64,000 nucleotides of DNA from Dimorphilus gyrociliatus (Eukaryota; Animalia; Annelida), in the NCBI GenBank assembly GCA_904063045.1, contig CAJFCJ010000001.1, positions 2,356,001-2,420,000 on the forward strand. The letters run 5' to 3'. Positions 3,766 through 46,820 of this stretch are shown here, in pieces (within the stretch, counting starts at the first letter, position 1; the number at the start of each line of letters is the position of its first letter). A program made the position numbers and the translations under genes. Under the pieces are notes generated by a model. That model saw only the letters and a list, made by a program, of their open reading frames with translations. It was not told where the DNA came from and did no database searches.

Positions 3766-5838
3766 TTCAAAGAAACAATGACATTGCAGTTGTCATTCAG
3801 TTGACCGAAAATATTTGAAAGATATTGTTAATGAAAGTTAAAGACGAAATGTTGAAGACAAATGACTAAAAGAAAGGAAATATTCAAACATTTCAAAATA
3901 GGTTATGCATTTTTCTTGTTTATACTGAGAATAATCCATAACGGTCTTATTGAACGGGCGCTATGGAATTGCTAGCGTATAAATCAATATTATTAGGCAT
4001 TAGTAGTCAACTAGCATGGATCATGTAAAAAAGAAATTATTAACGCAATCGACGCCGTTTATTATGTCTCATTTGACGCCCAATAACGAAATGATTGAAG
4101 CTCTCAGAAAGGAAGCCGTTCTTACCCACGAAGAATCCAATCAAATTATTCAAGACGATACTACAGCCGGAAAATGCATACTACTCATTTGCTTCATTCG
4201 TAAAAAGGACAACAGAAGCTGGACGAAATTCATAACAATTCTCGAACAATACGGAGCAAGTACCGTCTCTTCCATGCTAAGAAGTAAATCAACAGCATCG
4301 GAGGTCGTCCTACCCGATAAACGAACTTTATCCTACCTGGAAACCTGTTTAAACAACATATCGGTTCCCCATAAAATAGTTAAGGAAGTTGCTACCAAAG
4401 TTGTATTGAAAGAAGTCTATCACGACGACGTTTCCACCTTACAAGAAAAAATATTAAATCTTCAGCGGAGTCTACGAGCAGCTTCTCTTGTCAACCCCTC
4501 TCCTGCCCATCCTACTCTACCCCCAATATCGAGGCCGGACTCTGAAGAACGTTCAATGTCGGTCTCGTCGGAAGAGAGCTTCGGCGAGTTGCACGCTCTC
4601 ATCAAACAAAAAGAGGACGCCATCAAGAAGAAGGACAAAGAATACGAGAGATTGAAAAACATTATGAATGACATTCAACAAGAGTACGACACTTTAATGA
4701 ATGTAAATCAAGAGTATTTGAACATTATTACCAATCTTCAAGCAATTCACGATGGCAAAACTCCGAGGAGTGTTGCTGCCGAACGAGATGCTGCAATTTT
4801 AGACATGAAGTCTGCCCTTTTTGAAGCTCAGGAAAAGATTGAATCTCTTCGCACGGAAGTGCAGGAATTAGACGTTAAAGGTACTTGTATTACATAACCC
4901 ACCCACTCATTTTCTATGCTAGATTCACGCAACTAAACCGCTTCCTTTATACTTTCCACAAAAACAGCCAAAGATGCTCAGAGCGCTTTCAATCACCTCC
5001 AAAAAAAAGAACTAAAATACAGAGAAATGTTGGGCTTGCCTCCCGATTCCGACAATGAAAGTGTCGAGAGACGAATTCAAGAATTACTGCAAAACGGAAC
5101 CATGCAGAAAAGCGATCTGGACAAGCTCAAACAAGAACTAAACAAAGTTAAGGAAAGTAGACTGGCCGCTGAAGAGAAACTAAATGCCATCGTTCGAGAA
5201 AAGGAACATATCGAATTCTATATGAGGCAACAAGAGATGACGATGAGAAGGATGAAGAGACAAACTGTTGCTAAACCAACACTTGTTGCGGCCGAGTCGA
5301 CTGTTGTCCAAGCAAAAATTGCGGGTGCCCTTAGACTGCCTTCAATCGAACCGTCGTGTAGGCCAACAACAGGAAAACATCAACAAAAGTTAAACTATTG
5401 TATATTTTGTCGAACTGAGTTTGACAACAGTAAAGCGACGACCTGCAGAGTTCATTATAGAGCGCTGGTGAAAGGTCATTGGATGTGTTGCAAAGACGAA
5501 TGCCATCGAGGAGCTGGTTGCCTACAATTGCCACATATGTATATTGAAATAACAGCCGATAGAAAGGTGTTTTTGACGGACGGAGCCAGATATGCACAGC
5601 TTCTGTAAAAGAATCATTGCCAAATAGAATATTTTTTAGTATAATTCATAATTCAATATTTGAATTTGTTCTTTTAAAAACCTTAACTTGCAGAGTTTTC
5701 CTTTTTTTTCGTATTTGAATACGAAATGATTTTTCTAATTCTTTTTTTTTTATTTTTTACTTTTCATCTTTTTCCATAAACGCATTTTTCCCCTTTTTTC
5801 TACTGTCTATGGCTTTAGTTGTTTCGCTAGTCTTTTAC
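3766..5838 (+). repeat. Left arm of a 2,073-bp inverted repeat (partner 11426-13498)
   Basis: Line-by-line reverse-complement comparison: paired coordinates sum to 17264 throughout, no indels, one substitution seen (5212 vs 12052). Confidence 0.97.
4016..5608 (+). CDS. CARD/death-fold-like domain + coiled coil + C-terminal Cys/His Zn-finger-like protein, copy 1; exons 4016-4880 and 4968-5608, 501 aa
   Basis: A phase-1 GT-AG intron (4881-4967) joins the two listed ORFs in frame. The N-terminal ~90 aa follow a CARD-like pattern (L..EAVLT.EE..QI....T...K..LL..I..K...SW..F...L). Long heptad-rich segments. C-terminal CxxC...CxxH...WxCC...GC...H. Gene structure is firm; domain names are from recognition by eye. 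Confidence 0.75.
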
Positions 5839-11425: not shown

Positions 11426-13498
11426 GTAAAAGACTAGCGAAACAACTAAAGCCATAGACAGTAGAAAAAAGGGGAAAAATGCGTTTATGGAAAAAGATGA
11501 AAAGTAAAAAATAAAAAAAAAAGAATTAGAAAAATCATTTCGTATTCAAATACGAAAAAAAAGGAAAACTCTGCAAGTTAAGGTTTTTAAAAGAACAAAT
11601 TCAAATATTGAATTATGAATTATACTAAAAAATATTCTATTTGGCAATGATTCTTTTACAGAAGCTGTGCATATCTGGCTCCGTCCGTCAAAAACACCTT
11701 TCTATCGGCTGTTATTTCAATATACATATGTGGCAATTGTAGGCAACCAGCTCCTCGATGGCATTCGTCTTTGCAACACATCCAATGACCTTTCACCAGC
11801 GCTCTATAATGAACTCTGCAGGTCGTCGCTTTACTGTTGTCAAACTCAGTTCGACAAAATATACAATAGTTTAACTTTTGTTGATGTTTTCCTGTTGTTG
11901 GCCTACACGACGGTTCGATTGAAGGCAGTCTAAGGGCACCCGCAATTTTTGCTTGGACAACAGTCGACTCGGCCGCAACAAGTGTTGGTTTAGCAACAGT
12001 TTGTCTCTTCATCCTTCTCATCGTCATCTCTTGTTGCCTCATATAGAATTCAATATGTTCCTTTTCTCGAACGATGGCATTTAGTTTCTCTTCAGCGGCC
12101 AGTCTACTTTCCTTAACTTTGTTTAGTTCTTGTTTGAGCTTGTCCAGATCGCTTTTCTGCATGGTTCCGTTTTGCAGTAATTCTTGAATTCGTCTCTCGA
12201 CACTTTCATTGTCGGAATCGGGAGGCAAGCCCAACATTTCTCTGTATTTTAGTTCTTTTTTTTGGAGGTGATTGAAAGCGCTCTGAGCATCTTTGGCTGT
12301 TTTTGTGGAAAGTATAAAGGAAGCGGTTTAGTTGCGTGAATCTAGCATAGAAAATGAGTGGGTGGGTTATGTAATACAAGTACCTTTAACGTCTAATTCC
12401 TGCACTTCCGTGCGAAGAGATTCAATCTTTTCCTGAGCTTCAAAAAGGGCAGACTTCATGTCTAAAATTGCAGCATCTCGTTCGGCAGCAACACTCCTCG
12501 GAGTTTTGCCATCGTGAATTGCTTGAAGATTGGTAATAATGTTCAAATACTCTTGATTTACATTCATTAAAGTGTCGTACTCTTGTTGAATGTCATTCAT
12601 AATGTTTTTCAATCTCTCGTATTCTTTGTCCTTCTTCTTGATGGCGTCCTCTTTTTGTTTGATGAGAGCGTGCAACTCGCCGAAGCTCTCTTCCGACGAG
12701 ACCGACATTGAACGTTCTTCAGAGTCCGGCCTCGATATTGGGGGTAGAGTAGGATGGGCAGGAGAGGGGTTGACAAGAGAAGCTGCTCGTAGACTCCGCT
12801 GAAGATTTAATATTTTTTCTTGTAAGGTGGAAACGTCGTCGTGATAGACTTCTTTCAATACAACTTTGGTAGCAACTTCCTTAACTATTTTATGGGGAAC
12901 CGATATGTTGTTTAAACAGGTTTCCAGGTAGGATAAAGTTCGTTTATCGGGTAGGACGACCTCCGATGCTGTTGATTTACTTCTTAGCATGGAAGAGACG
13001 GTACTTGCTCCGTATTGTTCGAGAATTGTTATGAATTTCGTCCAGCTTCTGTTGTCCTTTTTACGAATGAAGCAAATGAGTAGTATGCATTTTCCGGCTG
13101 TAGTATCGTCTTGAATAATTTGATTGGATTCTTCGTGGGTAAGAACGGCTTCCTTTCTGAGAGCTTCAATCATTTCGTTATTGGGCGTCAAATGAGACAT
13201 AATAAACGGCGTCGATTGCGTTAATAATTTCTTTTTTACATGATCCATGCTAGTTGACTACTAATGCCTAATAATATTGATTTATACGCTAGCAATTCCA
13301 TAGCGCCCGTTCAATAAGACCGTTATGGATTATTCTCAGTATAAACAAGAAAAATGCATAACCTATTTTGAAATGTTTGAATATTTCCTTTCTTTTAGTC
13401 ATTTGTCTTCAACATTTCGTCTTTAACTTTCATTAACAATATCTTTCAAATATTTTCGGTCAACTGAATGACAACTGCAATGTCATTGTTTCTTTGAA
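11426..13498 (-). repeat. Right arm of the 2,073-bp inverted repeat (partner 3766-5838)
   Basis: Reverse complement of 3766-5838 with one substitution. Confidence 0.97.
11656..13248 (-). CDS. CARD-like + coiled coil + Zn-finger-like protein, copy 2; exons 13248-12384 and 12296-11656; protein identical to copy 1
   Basis: Mirror image of 4016-5608; ORF translations are identical. Confidence 0.75.
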
Positions 13499-27604: not shown

Positions 27605-30600
27605 ATGGCTGAGGAAAAGAAACGAATAAATAACGGAAGGAGCGAAGAGAATATAACGGCTACTGATGCAACACCGTTCTTTTTAACGTTAGCGGCCGCA
27701 AAATGGAAAAAAGAAACTAAATTATCACTCGAAAAGCACGAAACTATCGGTGAAAATCTGGAGAAATCATTGTTCGACAGTCTGAATTTAGTTTATTTCG
27801 AAAGAGAAGAGAAACTACACGAAATAAATAGTAGAGATGGTCAAAGGAAACTATTTATTTCTGATAATAATTGGTATACAAACGAAAAAGATAACATAAT
27901 TAATACTTATAAACTTATTTCTGAGTATCGAACACCAAGAAATTTAGCTGAACCGGAAGCATGCGTTACTGTAAGCAGAAGTTACGATCCAATTGAACAA
28001 ACATTACAAAAGTCAGTTATTCAATTCCTAAAATATATATTTAATGAGAATACTTGGATATTGACTTATGGCCGAGATACACCGGGTTATATTTCTGAGG
28101 TATTTGGAAAATTATACAAAGATAATAATAAGATATTTCTTCTTGGAATAACTGAAGATATTGAGGTAAATAAAATATCAAACGTATTCAAAAGTATTGA
28201 TCTTAACAGATAATTTATAAATAGAAAAGCAGTACAGTAGGTTGTTATAAAAAAAAGGTTAAATAATCAATTTTTAGCTACTAAAAAACGTTTTTTATTA
28301 ACCCAACTAAAAACCAATTGACTATATATTAATTATAATTAACTAATACTAATTATTAATTACATTAATTAGATAGAAGAGAAATGGAAAGCAATTTCCG
28401 GTAGACAATACAATCTACAACCGCAACATACAACATATATTAACTTTCCGAATGAGAAACAGTCGGATCGTTTTAGAAGATTACTCGAAGAGGAAATTGT
28501 TCGTAATATAAGGGAAAAGGATTCCAATCAGACGGAGAATGATTCTATTAAGGACGATAATGAGATTAATATTAGAACTCAAGTTTATAAATACGTCTAT
28601 CTCTTAATCGGCGGAGACGAAACAACCTATTCACAATTAAAGAATTGGTACACAGTATCTTGTAAAGTACGTAGTTCGAGAAATGTTGTAATGATCGTGA
28701 AAGACAGCGGTGATATTGCAAATCTCCTAATAGAGGCATTAAGAATTGTTGATAAGGTACGAAGTTACGAGGACTACCAAAGAATATTAAGAAAATATGA
28801 ATTCCTTTACGAGTTTGATAGTGAAGAAGCGTTTGAAATGCTTATGGATATAAAAAAAAGGCAAAGTTTTCTTGAAATTAGCGAGGAAAAGTGCTTTGAA
28901 TCAAACGAGATTATCTCAAAAATAAACGCTTTACAAGAGTGCTTAGACGTCGATCTATCTCCAAATAATCTACTTTACGGAATTATGGATCAACCGGATA
29001 ATACTTCCGACATTTTTACAGTCTTAAAGGTTATATACGATCATCTGTACAAATTAATTTGCTGCGAACATTTATGGAAACTATATCAGAAAATATTCAC
29101 CATAGATAGTACTGGTACAGCAAAGCTACTGTGCTATCTATGCGAAGAAAAGTCGTCGCTTCACATTTCTACTTCGGAAACGTCTCTCTCGTCTGTAAGC
29201 GAAAATAGCAAATCTACTCCCCACCTAGATAGGATTAACAGACAAAGAGCTTCTTATGTAACAACTGAACTAATTGGCGACGACTGTTATATACATTATG
29301 ATCCTACTACACCCGCAAAGTTTAGCCGCGAAGATAAGATAAGCTTAATAAAAGATATTTGGGAAAGTAGGAACTTTGAGCATGCAAGATATACAATGAA
29401 AAATGAGCGATATGTTTGGGACTTGTTAATCTATTCTATATTATCTAATAATAAGATATTAACTAATGAGCTTTTAGAACACACTAATAGCATAGCAGCA
29501 TGCCTATTTGCCCTAGTTATATTTAAAAGACTGTCAGACAGAGCGGAACTAATATCTGAAGTAGGCTTACAAAACGAACTAAAAGAGAGTAGTGAATATT
29601 TTGAGAAATTAGCATCAGAAATATTAAAGGATTTATACAACAAAGATAGGAAAACTGCTTATGGTATATTGCAATCCTACGTCCCTATTGATAAAGCAAA
29701 GAATGTTCAAGTATTAGATATTGCAGTAAATACAGAAGCTAAATCTTTCCTATCAGGATCTTGCGTCCAAACTTACACCGACCTTGTTTGGAGAGCTGGT
29801 ATGATAAACAATTGGAAATACCGTTTATTCATTCTACCAGGTTTTATTTTATTCTCACCTCTTGCCCTACTATTTGGATTGATAAGCTTTTCAAATTTAC
29901 AAAAACTGGAAGATGATGATGATGATAGTGAAAATAAAGATTCAACTTTTAAACAGATAAAAAATAGTAATTTTATCGCATTCTTTCGCTCACCGGTGGT
30001 TAAATATTCATTTAAATTGACAATATACCTGTTTTTTCTGGGATTATTCAGTTATTTTATCCTAACAAAATTGACTCCGTACAAGACGAAAGATGCAGAC
30101 GATATGACGATCTACGAACTTTTAATTATCATATGGGTAATCGGATTATTTTTTGATGAGTGTCGACAAATATTCCTTATTTGGTTGGAATATCGTCCTT
30201 TTGCATCGCAAGAGCGGAAAGGTTGTTTAAAAACGATATTTAATGTATTTTCGAAATATTTTCGAGGAGGTTGGGAAGTTTTGGATTTTACAAAGATATT
30301 ACTTTTCTTTTGTTCCGTGGCTCTTAGATGGCGAGTTGAAGAAGATAATTTCGTTGTTGCTCGAATATTTTTTGGAATAACGTTAATTCTTTTCTATTTG
30401 AGATTGTTAAAGTTTGCTTACGTATTCGAAGCTTTGGGCCCAAGGATTCTTATAATTTTTATGATGACAAGAGATCTTATTCAATTCCTTTTTATAGCCT
30501 TTATCTTCTTATTTAGTTTTGGAATTTCTTATCAAGCAATTCTGGGCCAATGGGTCGATACGGATGTATCATTCTACAACGTTAGTACCGCTATAATAGC

Positions 30601-31489
30601 ACCTCAATTTTGGAGAATTTTCGGAGAATTACAATTAAAAACCATTGATAAAGATAAACAATCTTCAGATGTTTTTAGGTGGTTTCTACCCGCCTATGTT
30701 GGAATATACTTAATAGCTATGAACATTCTACTATTGAATCTACTTATTGCAATATTTACTAATTCCTTTGAACAAGTCAGAAGTGAATCAAAACAAGTTT
30801 GGGGTGCTCAGAAAGTTAGTTCAACGAGAGAGTATAACCTCACTCCCCTCTTTCCATCCCCTATTAATATTATTACAATCATTCTTGAGATAATATTTAA
30901 AATACTTATAAAATGTTTAATATGCTGCTTTGGCGACGGTCAACCTGAAAGGGGTGCAAGCTTAAGAAGAGAATTTTTATCAAAGAGGGCAAGGCTTCAG
31001 ATGTCACTAAAAGACGCTGTCATTTCCGCTCAACCTAAAAGCTTGGAGAATGACGAAAAGAATGTTTTAGAATTTTTATCAGATCTTTCAGTTGACGTTG
31101 CTCAAATGAAAAAGTCGTTTACAGCGTCTTCTGTCAAAAATGACAATATACACGATTTGAGAAGTGAAATAGAAGAAATAAAGAAACTAATGCGCGACCT
31201 AAAGAGAACATCGAAGATTAATAACAATAATAGTAGAGAAAACTTAGTAAGTACAGTAGTGATGGATACTGGTCTAAGAAGAAGAAATACTGGAGAAATT
31301 CAAGAAACAGCAATAAAGAAGGAATTGGCACCAAAAACTTCAGCAGCACAAAAATATTCGGATAGTCCAATAAGTAATGTAAGTCAGACATTCTATAGAA
31401 AACTTTCCGATGTTAATGTAAAGGTCGAAGGTGAAAAAAAGGAAAAGGACGACGGTGCAACTATTGAAATAGAAAGCCAATGGTTGTAA
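27605..31489 (+). CDS. Divergent TRPM-like cation channel; exons 27605-28165 and 28373-31489, ~1225 aa
   Basis: SLOG/MHR-like motifs (WILTYG, LIGGDETT, IVKDSGDIANLL); FFRSPVVKY; S1-S6; pore FWRIFGEL; LLLNLLIAIF and TRP box WGAQK; C-terminal coiled coil. A phase-0 intron joins the ORFs. No kinase or NUDT9H domain. Confidence 0.88.

Positions 31490-32369: not shown

Positions 32370-38375
<6,006 letters not shown>

Positions 38376-38788: not shown

Positions 38789-38790
<2 letters not shown>

Positions 38791-38826
<36 letters not shown>
38791..38826. repeat. (TC)n microsatellite
   Basis: Uninterrupted TC run of ~18 units downstream of CYFIP. Confidence 0.95.
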
Positions 38827-38833
<7 letters not shown>

Positions 38834-40232
38834 TTCAATTTTCATTCTCTTTTCTTTGCAGTATTAATTGTACGCTTTATAATATTAATAAGAATGATGA
38901 TGATAATAGACTTTATACATTTGTACAAGTGTAGATTGTTCTACTTTTACTCATTTTATTTTTTTTCTTTGGAAAAGAACTCAATAAAAAATAGTAATCA
39001 TTAATAGAGGAAACATAGCTATAATACATATAGGCCAAATTTAGTGAAAAGTATACGACATTTGTATTATTGACGGAGGTGGTTAGGAGGCCAATATTGG
39101 CCATAATCGATATAGTAAAACTTTGACACGGAAGTTTAAGCAGACGGGAGAAAAAAGAGAAAGTCTGGTAAGTTTACAGTATTTAAAGAATTATTAGGAT
39201 TTATTCTAATATCTAATTTAAATATTTATAATATTAGCAAACTTTATAAATATCTTGGACGATTATTATAATAAATAAGACTATAATTGCGGAATATGCA
39301 TCATATATTTCATTCCTTATCTTATTAATAGCTTGTATATTATAAAGCAAGAGAACAGCCTAAAACTACTTATTCCTATCTTAATCTCTTTCGGTCCATG
39401 TAAATATATATATATATATAAATTCATGTCATGAGCGTGTTATTATTCGATCTTACCATCGTTTTTTTTAATAATATTCTATAAGCTTTCATACATATGA
39501 TATACACAAAAAGATAAATAAACTAATTGTGCATTCAGTATTTATATATGCATTAGTTATCTATTAAATATTTCTATCTGACTGGAAAATCAGTAATAAA
39601 GAATATTTATTTACCTACAAAACTCTATTAATTACCAACTGGATGATTCATTATAAAATATTCCAGACATTGAATTAACATTCTCAACGTAATATCATTT
39701 ACTTTCTCTCTTTAGTTTTCTTTTTTAAATACGATAAATATATAGATTTCCCTTTAAATTATTATATTAATTAATTGATTTATTAATTAACTCTTTATTA
39801 CTGAATGATGGGAATAGAATGAACAAAAAAAAAGAACCTACCCATAAAAAAAAGAACATTTAACTTTTGTTTTTATACATTTTGGCGGTTAAAACGATAT
39901 GATAAGACACTTGAGTAGATTTAATACAATTATATCATTTGCATATTTAAATTTACTAGTATGTTATTATGTTTGGGTATTCATTTTAATCTTTGTAATA
40001 TCTATTTTTAATCTGTCATAGTATTAAAGAAATCGATTAAGATTTAACGTATGCTTTATATATATATATATATATATATATTTGTTAGTTTTCGTACGAT
40101 AGGCAACATTTTCAATATGTATTAAATAAAAATTTGTATGTTCTACGAAAGTAACAACACCTGATCTTTATGTTCTAGTTTTTATTACTTTTATCACTTT
40201 GATCTGATATTTATAGTTAAATTAAATAGACA

Positions 40233-43200
40233 ATGAATATCCCACCTCCACCTCCGCCACCTCCACTTCCCGGTCAACAACTTACAAAGAACAAACCTGG
40301 ACAAATTCCATCAGCTCCTTCGCCATCGTCTACCTCGACTCTTGGCTATTCACCAACTCGTGCTGCTCCACAACCACCAGCTTCCCCTATGACTGCTGGT
40401 ATACCTGGACCTCCAGCCCCTCCCCCACCTCCTCCCCCGATGGATGCTTCTGCCCCGATTCAAAATCCTTCTCCTCCCCCTCCCCCAAATCTTCCACCTC
40501 CTGCAAGTTCTCCTCATCTTCCACCTACTCCAATATCCTCTCCTTCCTTTGCTGCCAATTCGCCAAGAATGATGAGCGCCTCTCAATCTGTTCCGAGATG
40601 TTCACTACCGCCTCCACCGCCTCCCCCACTATCCACCCTTCCTCATTCGCCTCCACCGAATATTCATTCTGTTCCATCGTCGTCACCTTCCGGTGGTGAT
40701 GCAAACAATAACGCTTTCGAATCGCCACCTATTTATCAGTCGATATCTGTGACAAGTACGCAAGATACGCTGGACGATTCTTTCGACGACGAAATCGAAC
40801 CAGCTAAAGAAGGAGCACAAGATGATCTACGTAAGAATATGGATTTACTAGATATTCTCCTAAGTTCAATTCTCCTAAATACGGACGGCAGTCCAAAATT
40901 TCAAACGGATATACAATCGACTTTGTCGGAAATCATTTATTACTTGGATAGTGGTACAGCCGACGAATGGAATGCAAAGCTATACATTTCTGATGAAAAA
41001 GAATATAATATGTTAACAATGGAAATAGTAAGTTAATTAATTAATTAATTATTTAAAAATCTCAGATTATCTCTCTTTTTTTTCTTTATTTATAGAAATT
41101 TATAACGGAAATGGTATGTAATATTAACATAGTAATAATATTATATAATAATAACAAAATAGCGTATGTTTAAATATAAAAAAGGGATACTTCCCTTCTA
41201 GTCCCTTCCCTTCTCTTCCCTCCCTTTATTGTATAAAATAGTATAATAGGGTCTGCTTTAAAAAATCTATTTTTATATAAATTATCGTTCAAAAGAAAAT
41301 CCTCTTGGAAGAAGGTGAAAGGCAAGCTTCAATGCTGTATACGTGGAGACCGTTATCAAAGGCAATTCCTAAAGTTTGTTGATAGTTTGTTTTATATAGA
41401 TTACAATCTAATTTATGTGTATTTACAACCGTTTATAGTTTACTTCCGGCGGTACGGGAGAGAGTAGTGAATTGTACAATTGCTGCTTAGAAGTTATGGA
41501 ACCTTATATAAATAAACTGCAAAAATTTAGAGATTTTGTAGTAAGTTTTCATCTTTAACGAAGGAAAATAAAAGAAAACATGTTTTTTTTTCTTTTTTTT
41601 TTTAAAAAAAAACAGATGAACGCCGTATCGAGATTCATTGAGATAATTGAGAAAATTCTACTTCAAAATACATTTGTTACTCAAAGCCTTAGAATACAAA
41701 TAGCGAAAACAGTGAATCTATTCGCTGTATTAGACGAGCTAATTAATTCAAAGACGAGCATCCTAAATGATTATACATTTTATAAGAGAGTTAAACAGAA
41801 TTTACACGGTACTGGAAGTAGTCAACAAGCTCTACCCGATGTTCATAATTTGGGAATATTCTTAGCTACTAAAAATCGTATATTTACAAAATTGAAAGAA
41901 GTTATTGATCATAAAAAATTAAAAGGATTCGAAGATTTCTTCTGCGATATAATAAACGAATGCTTATCATTATATTTTAATAAGCAATATTTTTCACCGT
42001 CTGATAAGCATGTATTAATTAAATTTGTTGCTTTTGGATTGTTTCTTATCGATTCGCAATTTGTCGACGCTACCAAATTGGATAAATTAAAGAAATTAAA
42101 TATTTCAAAGATTGATAAAGCATTCAAGAATGTTGAAACTTTACCATTGTATGGCGATATGGTTATTTCACCATTTCAATATGTTAGTATGACTAAACAT
42201 TTTGATCCGTCTAAGTGGACGCTCTGTATGAGCGAAGAGAGAAATCTTCAGGGTAATATCTCTAAAAGATCGGCGAACGTTCAGAGTGAAATGAATAATT
42301 TCATAACGAAACTTCGATATTTCGAAATAGAGAATAAAGGTATTGTGACAAAAAATAACTGTCAGAGGTTATATAAATTAGCAATCGAAGGATTACAATT
42401 ACTCTCTTCGTGGACGGCTTTGGTTACCGAAGTATTTTCTTGGAAACTTCACAAGCCGGCCGATTATACAGAAGAAATGAATAAAGCCCTCTCGTCCTGT
42501 CCGGATGAAAAGGAGAGAGATAGAATTCGAGTTCTTTTCGAAGAGACAAAGATTTACGAATACGCAACGAAACATAACTACGACGACGAAGAGAAGATTG
42601 CCCTTATTACTGTTATTGCTTCTATAAAGACCGTTCAAAAAGAGATGAAAGCGTATTCAAAAACTCTGTCGGAAGGTATTCGAAAGTCTATATACTATAG
42701 AACTCAGAAATTGATTAAGGAAGATCTTCGTGATACTCTAAGGAAAGCTGTAAAAAATGGAAAAGAAAAACTAAGAAATCTTCTTGTTTTTAGCCGAGAA
42801 ACAATTGGCCATTGGCCTCCAAATTACAATCCTAATTCAGATCCAATTTTACAAGGGAAAAAGATGAAAGACTTAGATTTATCAACAAACTCCGATACTT
42901 GCCAAACTACTGAACAAACTCATTTATTGCGAACTATACTTGAATATATTATTTCAAGTAATCCAACTGGTGTATTTGCTAAAAAGAACTTGGAGAAAGA
43001 TACTAGTTTGGCTATAGAGGATTTCCTGAGCGAATCTTTTCTTTGGGAGCAATTATTGAATTTTGATAGAACTTTAAAAAATTGTTGTGACCTTTCTCAG
43101 TTGTGGTTCAGAGAGTTTTTTATTGAGTTGGCTAAAGGCGAAAGAGTTCAATTCGAAGCCGAAAGCTCTATGCCTTTCATTCTAATTGATTTCCTTGTTG

Positions 43201-45612
43201 AACATAACAAATCGGAATATGTAGAGTACGTCTTCTACGCGTTTGATTTGTATAATGATAGTGCCGATTACGCTCTCAACGTTTTCAAGAAGAAGTTTCT
43301 ATACGAAGAGATTGAAGCGGAAGTGGATCTTTGCTTTGAACAGTTCTTATACAAACTGTGCGATCATATGTACAACTATTATAGGACACTAGCTGGAAGG
43401 TAGGAACTATAATATATATATATAATATATATAATTGTGAATATTTTCAGTTTAACGTTAAAATCATATTTGGGAAATCACGTGACTAAAAAATTAAGCA
43501 AAGATTTACGTATACACGCCAGAAGGAATTTCTTACCGCTTCTTAGTCAAACGAATATAAGAGTAAGTTATTTTAAAAGAATGTTAACTTATTAATTAGT
43601 TGAATAATTTTATTTTTTAATTAGCTATTAGGACGTAATATTGATCTAAAGAGAAGAATTTCACAAAGATTGAACATGTTCTTTAGTCGTTCGTTAGAGA
43701 ATGTTCTACACTATTTTGAATCGGTTAATTTACACACCATATGCGTAAGTATACAACATTACTTTATTTAATTATTAATTAAGTAATTAATTAGTTAATT
43801 ACTTCTATATATGATTATTATTATTTATAATTTTCCCTTCTCTTTCTACTTAGGAAATCGAAGGTATAATAAATGTTACTAAATTAGCTCATAAGCTTAT
43901 TTCCGAGCATATTACGCTTACTCCATTTGAACATCTTCTACAAATGGCAAGATATGATTCGAAAAGTGACAGATGTCGAATTGCTCAAAGAATTGTACAA
44001 TGCGTTACGGATGATTTACCACTTTACGCTTATAATACGTCAACGGCAAGATTTGTCATGTCGGAGATAAGATCGAAAACTGAAGAAGCTAGAATTAGTA
44101 AGGAAAAGGGAGGTAAAGAAGATAAAAGACGATTTATGGATCATAGAGATTCTTGGGGTAGTAAGGAGCTGGTAGACGCTTTTAGAATTATATATTTGCC
44201 ATACACTAACTTTATAGGATTACCACATGCCGTTAGCATTTGTAACTTTCTTGATTATGCTGGAATAAGCTATTTACTAGAAGAATGTGTGAAATTTATT
44301 GAAAAGTCTCTAAACGATATTATAATGCCGTTTGTTCGGTCCATTAAGAAAGCGTTACCACCAGAGGGAATAAAACTGCCTAGGTACATTACTTTTATAG
44401 GAAAGAATGATAATAATTAATAATTCTCTTCCAACAGATACGAATATGGTCACGTTGGCGCGTTCACTAAATTTAGAACGGCTTTTGTTCATATACTTAA
44501 ATTCGATTTATCGGATTTGTACGAAGCTTTAGCGGGAGCCGGAAATTGTTTAGCATTCTGTCTAATTATTACGGAAAATGTATTTGTAAATGAAACTAAT
44601 AGTATTAGATTGGGTGGATATTTTTGTAATAATTTACCTACACCCTATATTGAACAAGATGAGAAATCAACTCATTCGAAAAAGAAAGCGGAAGCGTTAA
44701 AGAAATTGAAATACGAGAATAAAAATTGCTACGTTCGATTTGTTGCCGAAAATTTTAAGGAATTAAGCGACGATAGAAAGAAGTTAGTTAAACAGAATGA
44801 ATTATTAGAAAGAGAAAAATTAGTTTGCGGATTGAATATTTTCCCAAAAATTTTGGATAAATTAAAAAAGAAATTATGCCAAGAGAACGATAAGGATTTA
44901 TGGTTTGGAGATGAACCGGAAAATGGTATAATGCATATAACGAATTGTTCAGAATTTTATAGAGTTTGGAGTGTTTTACAATTCGTTTTCTCAATACCAA
45001 CAATGTCGGCCCACGCCGAAACTGTCGAGTAAGAATCTTGGTTTTTTCTTCTTCTTTTTTTTTATATATAGATCAATACATATAGTTTCTATTATTTTCT
45101 TCAGGGCATTGTACGGCGATGGTCTACAATGGATGGGATGTTCGCTTATACAACTTTTAGGACAGGAAAGGAAATTTGAAGTATTAGATATTTCCTATCA
45201 TATTGAGAAATTATACGAACCAGCTAAAGGCGGTACTAAAAATAAAATGAATGATCAAATGGTAACTTTAAAATTGATTCTATAATTAGATATTTAACTA
45301 GTACAAATGTAATTTAATCTTCTTTATTTTGCTTTTTTTTAACAGTATAATAAGTTAATGCAAAGAATTCGAGCAATGCATAAAATAAATAGTGAAATTT
45401 TTGGTATTGTTGGAAAGTACTGCTGTACTCAATCTCAACCGAAAGAATCAATTAAAAATCAGTTTGAGACCCCTTTAGAAAATGTTCATCATTTCGATCC
45501 ACCTTTGGAGATTGACTTAGATCAATCGTCGGCAATCTCAATAAAAACTTCATTAAATGTGGTATCGGATGAAGTTGAACCTCCAAAACAAAAGGTTGAA
45601 ACTGAAGTTTAG
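40233..45612 (+). CDS. Divergent CYFIP paralogue with a long N-terminal proline-rich extension, multi-exon
   Basis: Exon 1 (40233-41028) carries polyPro and then a segment aligning to the CYFIP N-terminus. Next exon [26 protein letters not shown]. Also [50 protein letters not shown]. Confidence 0.9.
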
Positions 45613-46148: not shown

Positions 46149-46820
46149 ATGTCGTCATCATCAAAATCTGGTAGTATACGTTTAATGAGAAAGGAGGAGG
46201 AGGCCGATTTACGGTGGCGAACTTTTATCTATCTTAGATTCAAGAATATTTTTCCATCATTTTTCAAAACCTGGCATAAGATGCCAGTCCTGTGGATTTA
46301 CTATATCCTGTTGGCTGTTATTATGCAGAAATACCTTTACTATTCATTTATAGTCTCAGTAATATCTTCGTATCTTGTGATTATAGGTTATCATTTTTCT
46401 TCGTTCGTATTGGTGTTGAATTGTCTCCAGTGGTTTAAAAATCATTATTTCGACCTATTTGACCACTATCAGAAGATAGAAAAAGCAGGTGTCTTTGTAT
46501 ATGCCGACGAGGATGACAAACCAGCAGGAGTATTCATATTAGTACCAAAAAATTCTACTACTCTAAACATTCATAGCGTAAGAGTGAAAGAAGAATATAG
46601 AAGAAGGGGAATTGGAAGAAAGATAATGGAATTCACTAAGGAATATGCAAAAAAGGAAAATTTTAAAATAATTTCACTAACGACATCCACCTTGAATGTG
46701 GTATCAAATAAATTTTATCCCACTATAGGCTTTGAAAAACAACCAAAAACAGATATTTTGATAACAACCCTTCCGTTTGTCTACTTTTACTATTTAACCT
46801 ACAATTACTACGTGAGATAA
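46149..46820 (+). CDS. GNAT N-acetyltransferase, NAT8/camello-like, single exon
   Basis: 223-aa ORF with an N-terminal hydrophobic segment, acetyl-CoA motif A (VKEEYRRRGIGRKIM) and motif B (LTTSTLNVVSNKFYPTIGF). Confidence 0.8.
   Translation: MSSSSKSGSIRLMRKEEEADLRWRTFIYLRFKNIFPSFFKTWHKMPVLWIYYILLAVIMQKYLYYSFIVSVISSYLVIIGYHFSSFVLVLNCLQWFKNHYFDLFDHYQKIEKAGVFVYADEDDKPAGVFILVPKNSTTLNIHSVRVKEEYRRRGIGRKIMEFTKEYAKKENFKIISLTTSTLNVVSNKFYPTIGFEKQPKTDILITTLPFVYFYYLTYNYYVR

Follow-up and report, generated by a model that had tools for sequence, protein, structure and literature searches.

CYFIP proteins are among the most conserved regulators of actin and are usually treated as rigid, motif-free scaffolds. 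Within the WAVE regulatory complex (WRC), the polyproline domains of WAVE and Abi are needed for protrusion driven by the complex, even without VCA (bioRxiv 10.1101/2022.05.14.491902). Here we describe a CYFIP paralogue, gene B, that carries a proline-rich arm on the CYFIP chain itself. It lies in a stretch of 64,000 nucleotides from the annelid Dimorphilus gyrociliatus (contig CAJFCJ010000001.1 of assembly GCA_904063045.1, positions 2,356,001 to 2,420,000 of the forward strand), which was analysed as a whole and is called the window below; positions are those of the window unless another contig is named. Gene B is intact, transcribed, correctly spliced and kept by selection, and its arm lies within the reading frame that begins at the first ATG of the transcript.

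Two plus-strand sets of open reading frames (ORFs) in the window match the CYFIP family PF05994 (FragX_IP), and a six-frame search of the whole 78-Mb assembly found CYFIP solely at these two places. A first-pass annotation of this DNA, made from the letters alone, had proposed tandem CYFIP paralogues, and this is what is found: two adjacent genes, the only two in the genome. Gene A (32370-38375, + strand) is a canonical CYFIP of 18 exons and ~1267 amino acids (aa), modelled by spliced alignment to the oyster CYFIP P0158 without an RNA check, and its 5-nt exon at 35505-35509 is doubtful; in a phylogenetic tree it groups with mollusc CYFIPs. Gene B (40233-45612) follows directly downstream on the same strand and has a predicted protein of 1517 aa, with four exons scoring 357, 75, 92 and 51 bits against PF05994 (curated cut-off 23.3 bits). 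It is collinear with CYFIP1 (3P8C chain A) over residues 131-719 (E 2e-130), 797-957 (E 7e-19) and 964-1145 (E 3e-21). The proteins of A and B are 37% identical in a global alignment, and relative to A, gene B has extra insertions and a C-terminal extension of ~40 aa. A six-frame genome search with PF07159, the CYRI-like Rac-binding domain, returned no match even at canonical gene A and is uninformative here; the corresponding region of B aligns to CYFIP1 131-330.

The exon structures of the two genes can be matched directly. Exon 2 of A and exon 3 of B are both 78 nt long, exon 3 of A and exon 4 of B are both 102 nt long, and the phases agree. The first-pass annotation had put the donor of the polyproline exon at the position of CYFIP intron 1, which is wrong, as the matching donor is the one after an 18-nt micro-exon further downstream. 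A single exon of B, 1,784 nt in length, spans ten exons of A (exons 4-13), indicating that many introns were lost in B. This large-scale loss affects the fast-evolving copy in a genome described as having kept ancestral introns.

The first coding exon of gene B occupies 40233-41027 on the plus strand, inside a single open frame of 267 codons (40233-41036); its end, previously given as 41028, moves by one nucleotide, the donor GT being at 41028-41029. Multiple runs of five to eight prolines and an acidic patch had been noted in this one exon, and both are present. By residue, the proline runs fall at 4-11 (P8), 63-69 (P7), 81-85 (P5), 88-90, 126-132 (P7) and 140-142, and the patch DDSFDDEIE at 181-189. 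The start codon and the arm proper (residues 1-160, 40233-40712) thus hold four tracts (4-11, 63-69, 81-90 and 126-132) with linkers rich in Ser, Ala and Thr between them, and the arm is 36% Pro and 16% Ser. It is followed by an acidic block (residues 161-195, 40713-40817, ESPPIYQSISVTSTQDTLDDSFDDE...), which shows the strongest conservation within the extension when two species are compared (ratio of non-synonymous to synonymous change, omega, ~0.09), and by a tail (residues 196-265, 40818-41027) that is 70% identical to that of the related species and in which AlphaFold2 (AF2) predicts helices. Run on a two-sequence alignment, AF2 gave residues 1-192 no predicted secondary structure and placed low-confidence helices at 193-216, 221-239, 243-249 and 255-264. 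With several tracts of at least five prolines, flexible linkers and a segment predicted to be disordered, the arm has a composition like that of formin FH1 or WASP-family regions.

Several properties of the DNA set this exon apart from chance sequence. Its prolines are encoded by a mixture of all four CCN codons (CCT, CCA, CCG and CCC), and the arm is therefore not a microsatellite or simple DNA repeat. The G+C content of the arm is 54%, versus 22% directly upstream. When the exon was shuffled 20,000 times, the frame never stayed open, which makes the observation real and well beyond chance. Recent exon shuffling of the arm from WAVE, WASP or a formin was considered and rejected, as a genome search for a paralogous copy finds only the arm itself.

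The transcript of gene B is represented by one 4,864-nt contig of the public run X3, which has 0 mismatches to the window and runs free of introns from an exon of the 5′ untranslated region (5′UTR) through the arm into the 3′UTR. It was placed on 40229-41021, 41619-43397, 43449-43562, 43625-43744, 43854-44381, 44436-45028, 45105-45260 and from 45345 to past 45800. From the first of these pieces to the second the contig has 207 letters, exactly 6+18+78+102+3 nt: the last 6 nt of exon 1, the micro-exon, two exons of 78 nt (41296-41373) and 102 nt (41439-41540), and one codon at the start of the large exon. The micro-exon (41096-41113, encoding KFITEM) is bounded by GT-AG introns on both sides, and the two exons after it are separated by a 65-nt intron whose joint (41373 to 41439) is present in the contig. 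The 1,784-nt exon (41616-43399) contributes the 357-bit match to PF05994, aligns to CYFIP1 131-719 and is covered by the contig without mismatch. The remaining coding exons (43451-43562, 43625-43744, 43854-44383, 44438-45028, 45105-45261 and 45346-45612) align to CYFIP1 797-957 and 964-1145 and lead to a stop codon at 45610-45612 through GT..AG joints seen in X3, two of which recur in runs X1 or X2. Parts of the arm and body, and two of the joints, are seen again in contigs of two environmental metatranscriptomes, one from coral and one marine. All 11 introns of the gene are GT-AG, the frame stays open through 1517 codons, and introns of 51-109 nt agree with the published genome (PMC7854359). 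The first-pass annotation had assumed a transcript that links the polyproline exon to the CYFIP body, and the X3 contig bears this out by in-frame splicing; the gene is expressed.

At the 5′ end, 15 loose letters of the contig match 39152-39166 and are followed by a G and then by a GTAAGT donor at 39168. These letters give the 3′ end (39152-39167) of a non-coding first exon that starts further upstream, and the contig jumps from 39167 to 40230 across a 5′UTR intron of 1062 nt (39168-40229; GT at 39168, AG at 40228-40229), by far the longest intron of gene B. The ATG at 40233 (acaATGa, with A at -3) is the first on the known transcript; an in-frame TAG lies at 39084-39086, with zero ATG from there to 39167. 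A trans-spliced leader was tried as the source of the 15 letters and rejected since they map in cis, and trans-splicing is absent according to the genome paper (PMC7854359). The median intron in this genome is ~66 nt versus the 1062 nt of the 5′UTR intron, which holds an (AT)n run at ~40064-40082; unusually long introns in this genome tend to contain open-chromatin peaks (PMC7854359).

Conservation was assessed against a genomic contig from a public run (L018) that belongs to a related but clearly distinct species and carries both CYFIP genes. The orthologue of B on this contig begins MNIPPPPPPPPQPPPPPPLP... and has polyproline tracts at the same four places, an identical KFITEM micro-exon (L018:7869-7886) and the same exon order and frame; blocks common to the two proteins include LPPPPPPPLSTLPH and ESPPIYQSIS...LDDSFD. 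Synonymous sites are saturated between the two species (proportion of synonymous differences, pS, 0.66-0.8), and the rate of non-synonymous change (dN) is 0.47 in the arm, 0.20 in residues 161-265, 0.07-0.08 in the body of B and 0.02-0.03 in gene A. An arm that stays open and proline-rich at a distance where neutral sequence is randomised points to constraint, although it evolves fast, like disordered regions. At closer range, 31 of the 35 differences listed for the environmental contigs are synonymous and 4 are non-synonymous, with no stops or frameshifts in the 1517 codons of B, and all five differences within the arm in X1 are synonymous third-position changes. Judged by these substitution patterns, the arm is under purifying selection and is conserved in the related species.

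The relationship of the exon-1 tail to the canonical CYFIP N-terminus (residues 1-70) is less clear. The tail had been described as aligning to that N-terminus, and this claim finds no statistical support: the similarity is non-significant by BLASTP against exon 1 of gene A (E 0.19 and 12) and by hhalign of B and its orthologue against ten canonical N-termini (E 0.53), phmmer of the tail against PDB gives no match, and two alignments compete. A global alignment with gene A sets DDLRKNMDLLDILL opposite one 15-residue canonical stretch, and BLASTP and hhalign set ESPPIYQSIS..LDDSFDD opposite another of the same length. Under the second alignment the acidic patch would be the former DTNFED motif, and the acidic block, which gives the best alignment to canonical N-termini, though a non-significant one, may correspond to the canonical PCIE...LDTNFED segment. 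We regard exon 1 as the N-terminal exon of a CYFIP paralogue because of its splicing and frame, not because of similarity.

We then compared residues with known functions in the WRC. E434, F626 and M632 are residues that, following the WRC structure papers, we take to belong to the Rac A site. The other residues came from Schaks et al. (PMC6264382), whose list of mutants does not include these three, and positions were assigned through alignments to 3P8C chain A with a multiple-alignment check. Kept in B are R190 and F626 of the A site, Y967 and G971 of the Rac D site (RYEYGHVG), L697 and Y704 of the WCA clamp, a set of five residues that hold the WAVE WH2/C helices, and Y923 and E1084, the residues that Sra-1 supplies to the WIRS pocket. 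Three of the five clamp residues are lost, L841 being replaced by Gln, F844 by Val and W845 deleted, and at the A site E434 is replaced by Ile beside a 12-aa insert and M632 by Lys; C179 is Thr in B, at a position that varies among canonical CYFIPs too. The 11-residue clamp motif, conserved in canonical CYFIPs, has become AQRIVQCVTDD in B and AQKIVQSVTDD in the orthologue; the clamp changes are thus common to both, and the other residue changes of B are present in the related species as well. L841A/F844A/W845A belongs to the set of mammalian mutants for WCA release (PMC6264382). A separate change was seen in gene A, which has RTDKGSEG in place of the R-x-(E/D)-Y-G-x-x-G of other CYFIPs and thus carries Y967>K (37201-37482; compare 44438-44470 in B).

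A possible second WAVE regulatory complex had been suggested for this paralogue, to be checked by looking for duplicated partners. The genome has one locus for NCKAP1 and one for the Abi homeodomain-homology region (Abi_HHR), and of its six WH2 matches one is WAVE (L021, with a WHD, a proline-rich region and WH2-C-A), whose WHD has no second match in the genome. Each of NCKAP1, Abi and WAVE is thus encoded at a single locus, Brk1 not being among the subunits searched, which argues against a second subunit set; if B is in the WRC, it shares its partners with A and is at most an alternative CYFIP subunit for them. Among possible ligands, profilin has at least six loci in the genome. These profilin-family loci (L025-L030, at C4:1836444, C128:51219, C2:1015023, C4:651124, C19:3256542 and C1:2825002) occur in a genome of 78 Mb whose gene set is reduced; some of them have no introns, and L025 is without the N-terminal aromatic residues for polyproline binding.

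On this basis we propose, with a probability of roughly 0.5, that gene B encodes a variant WRC subunit whose arm would serve as a multivalent landing pad and whose autoinhibition would be altered. B would still assemble with Nap1, WAVE, Abi and Brk1 and would replace A in a fraction of the complexes, with the same single-copy Nap1, WAVE and Abi. Assembly is favoured because the WIRS pocket, the D site, L697 and Y704 are retained and constraint extends over the full length of the protein. The arm would hang free from the complex, which is sterically plausible because N-terminally tagged EGFP-Sra-1 is functional and rescues lamellipodia in mouse cells (PMC6264382). It might then act as the proline-rich domains of WAVE and Abi or formin FH1 do, landing profilin-actin and proteins with EVH1, WW or SH3 domains and raising the local supply of actin and elongation factors; we infer such binding purely from composition, namely the tracts of five to eight prolines, the conserved LPPPPPPPL and PPLP. 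Because L841, F844 and W845 are lost while the Rac D site and WIRS pocket are kept, a complex containing B would probably be less auto-inhibited or otherwise regulated. The result would be a variant WRC that has gained a third proline-rich domain.

Several points weigh against this proposal. Loss of the clamp triad, E434 and M632 fits equally well with B having left the WAVE complex. So do the 37% identity to A and the very long branch of B, which stands among other long branches in the tree with a stem of 1.25 changes per site. A complex prediction for arm residues 1-40 with a single-exon profilin (L027) of this genome scored 0.03, which gives no verdict either way. The library type of X3 is not recorded, and the run was treated as cDNA solely since the contig is without introns. 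Contigs cannot reveal transcript starts or expression levels, shorter isoforms that start 3′ of the arm remain compatible with them, and translation from 40233 is a prediction from transcript and frame.

The main rival takes the first of these points further. It holds that B has left the WAVE complex and is a free-standing scaffold, recruited by Rac through the D site, that brings polyproline ligands to membranes, or that B has a different CYFIP function, for example in translational control. In other animals CYFIP without Nap1 is unstable, and B keeps Y923 and E1084, which are meaningful only together with Abi, along with L697 and Y704; its full-length collinearity and the purifying selection on all CYFIP regions also speak for continued assembly. 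The sequence divergence, the five lost residues of the clamp and A site, the extra insertions and C-terminal extension, and the failure to find dedicated paralogues of NCKAP1, Abi or WAVE would all fit a protein outside the complex, and we treat departure from the WRC as a possible, though not the favoured, explanation.

Two further rivals concern the arm itself. The polyproline stretch could be untranslated, as a long 5′ leader or an upstream ORF, with the protein starting near Met203 (MDLLDILL), about opposite which canonical CYFIP starts in the global alignment; the arm is known at the level of DNA and RNA, and the contigs leave the transcript start undefined. This is very improbable, given a first ATG with A at -3 that is preceded by an in-frame stop and lies in frame with the body, a frame of ~200 codons kept open in two species with saturated synonymous sites, five of five arm differences in a close relative confined to synonymous third positions, and no shuffle of the exon that remained open. 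Nor do we give much credence to an artefact, in which assembly would have fused two neighbouring transcripts to give the link between arm and body, or B would be a duplicate in decay. Such an account can point to there being just one contig of full length, from a run whose library type is unrecorded, and it is hardly believable in view of GT-AG splicing at every junction, a continuous frame, the same exon order, micro-exon and frame in a second species, and the 31:4 excess of synonymous over non-synonymous differences with the frame undamaged.

If B is a WRC-variant subunit, it would couple a polyproline arm of its own with the equivalent of an engineered 'activating' mutation of the WCA clamp, and it would offer a natural test of what the proline-rich domains, as opposed to VCA, contribute to WRC output and of what each Rac site and the clamp add. 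It would also mean that paralogous subunits can make the WRC more diverse in a miniature invertebrate whose gene set is otherwise reduced. A bolder version, which we put forward as speculation and consider doubtful, is that ancestral regulatory surfaces were split after the duplication. Gene A would have kept the WCA clamp and A site and lost the D-site tyrosine (Y967>K), and B would have kept the D site and WIRS pocket, given up the C-helix clamp together with some of the A site, and gained the FH1-like arm. The WAVE complex that B forms would then be 'open' by nature, placed, not switched on, by Rac and receptors, and would feed profilin-actin directly. Such a split would let nature test the recent proposal that polyproline domains are central to actin assembly by the WRC. 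Should B instead act outside the WRC, an independent role would be a first for a full-length protein of the CYFIP fold.

The surroundings of the gene pair contain further features. On the contig of the related species, the canonical CYFIP (L018:54-4597, - strand) and the paralogue (L018:6948-11160, + strand) are head-to-head, that is divergent, and ~2.3 kb apart, versus the tandem arrangement in the window, so one of the two genes must have been inverted since the species split. An antisense small ORF lies within an intron of gene A (35412-35615, - strand). Its start is hydrophobic, its C-terminal part holds the conserved segment ...GIVC(I/L)L(L/I)PI(V/I).., and it recurs in the same intron of the related species (L018:1650-1829, + strand); its retention in both species argues for a real nested gene. 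A (CT)n microsatellite of ~40 nt (38790-38830) lies within the 0.8 kb that separate the stop of A from the first exon of B. Just upstream of the CYFIP pair, a single-exon ORF of 932 aa (28691-31489, + strand) with TRPM2-like and ion-transport domains marks a TRPM-type channel gene, and directly downstream of gene B lies a single-exon ORF of 223 aa for a GNAT-family N-acetyltransferase (46149-46820, + strand). Farther away, ORF pairs of equal lengths (293 aa and 193 aa) on opposite strands, at 4016-5608 (+) and 11656-13248 (-), indicate a gene palindrome.

When the large exon of B was scored against 1.84 billion representatives, an orthologue fragment at 88% identity was followed by ordinary CYFIPs at ≤41%. 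When proteins of 146-464 aa were searched by words from the exon-1 tail (residues 150-265), only the orthologue of the related species was found; a scan of JGI metagenomes with exon 1 found nothing, and none of the papers searched reports a polyproline domain in a CYFIP. A set of 49 full-length representatives carries the LYTWR anchor, and in just one of them (P0008) do at least four consecutive prolines precede it: XP_074650869.1, a predicted 'cytoplasmic FMR1-interacting protein 1-like' of 1523 aa from the nemertean Tubulanus polymorphus. The first-pass annotation had stated that CYFIP has no proline-rich domain, to which this prediction is at least one exception. Topologies that unite A and B in one clade (approximately unbiased test, p-AU 0.06) or B and the Tubulanus long form in one clade (p-AU 0.24) are both not rejected, and the tree is compatible with a shared as well as with a separate origin of B and the nemertean protein.

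The nemertean protein resembles B in overall design. It too is a divergent spiralian CYFIP paralogue of similar length with a C-terminal extension, and its N-terminal extension of ~185 aa carries PPPPP and PPPP runs and acidic stretches as in B. Its prolines, however, are fewer and its runs shorter, and the extension has no detectable similarity to the arm of B. Unlike B, it keeps the clamp motif LHAFWEINYDF and E434, and it is 42% identical to canonical CYFIPs and 36% to B.

CYFIP1/Sra-1 and CYFIP2/PIR121 (PF05994; 3P8C chain A) are collinear with B over its full length, with intron positions shared between A and B, but are without the ~190-aa N-terminal extension with its four polyproline tracts and the ~40-aa C-terminal extension. 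The proline-rich domains of WAVE and Abi and the FH1 of formins resemble the arm in being predicted-disordered regions with tracts of 5-8 prolines and flexible linkers beside an actin-assembly machine; in B, unlike in these, the tracts sit on the CYFIP subunit, which is normally free of them, and show no sequence relation to the worm's WAVE or any other locus in the genome. CYRI/FAM49 (PF07159) is, like B, an offshoot of the CYFIP fold that keeps a Rac-binding surface. While CYRI consists of the DUF1394 domain alone, B keeps the whole CYFIP architecture.

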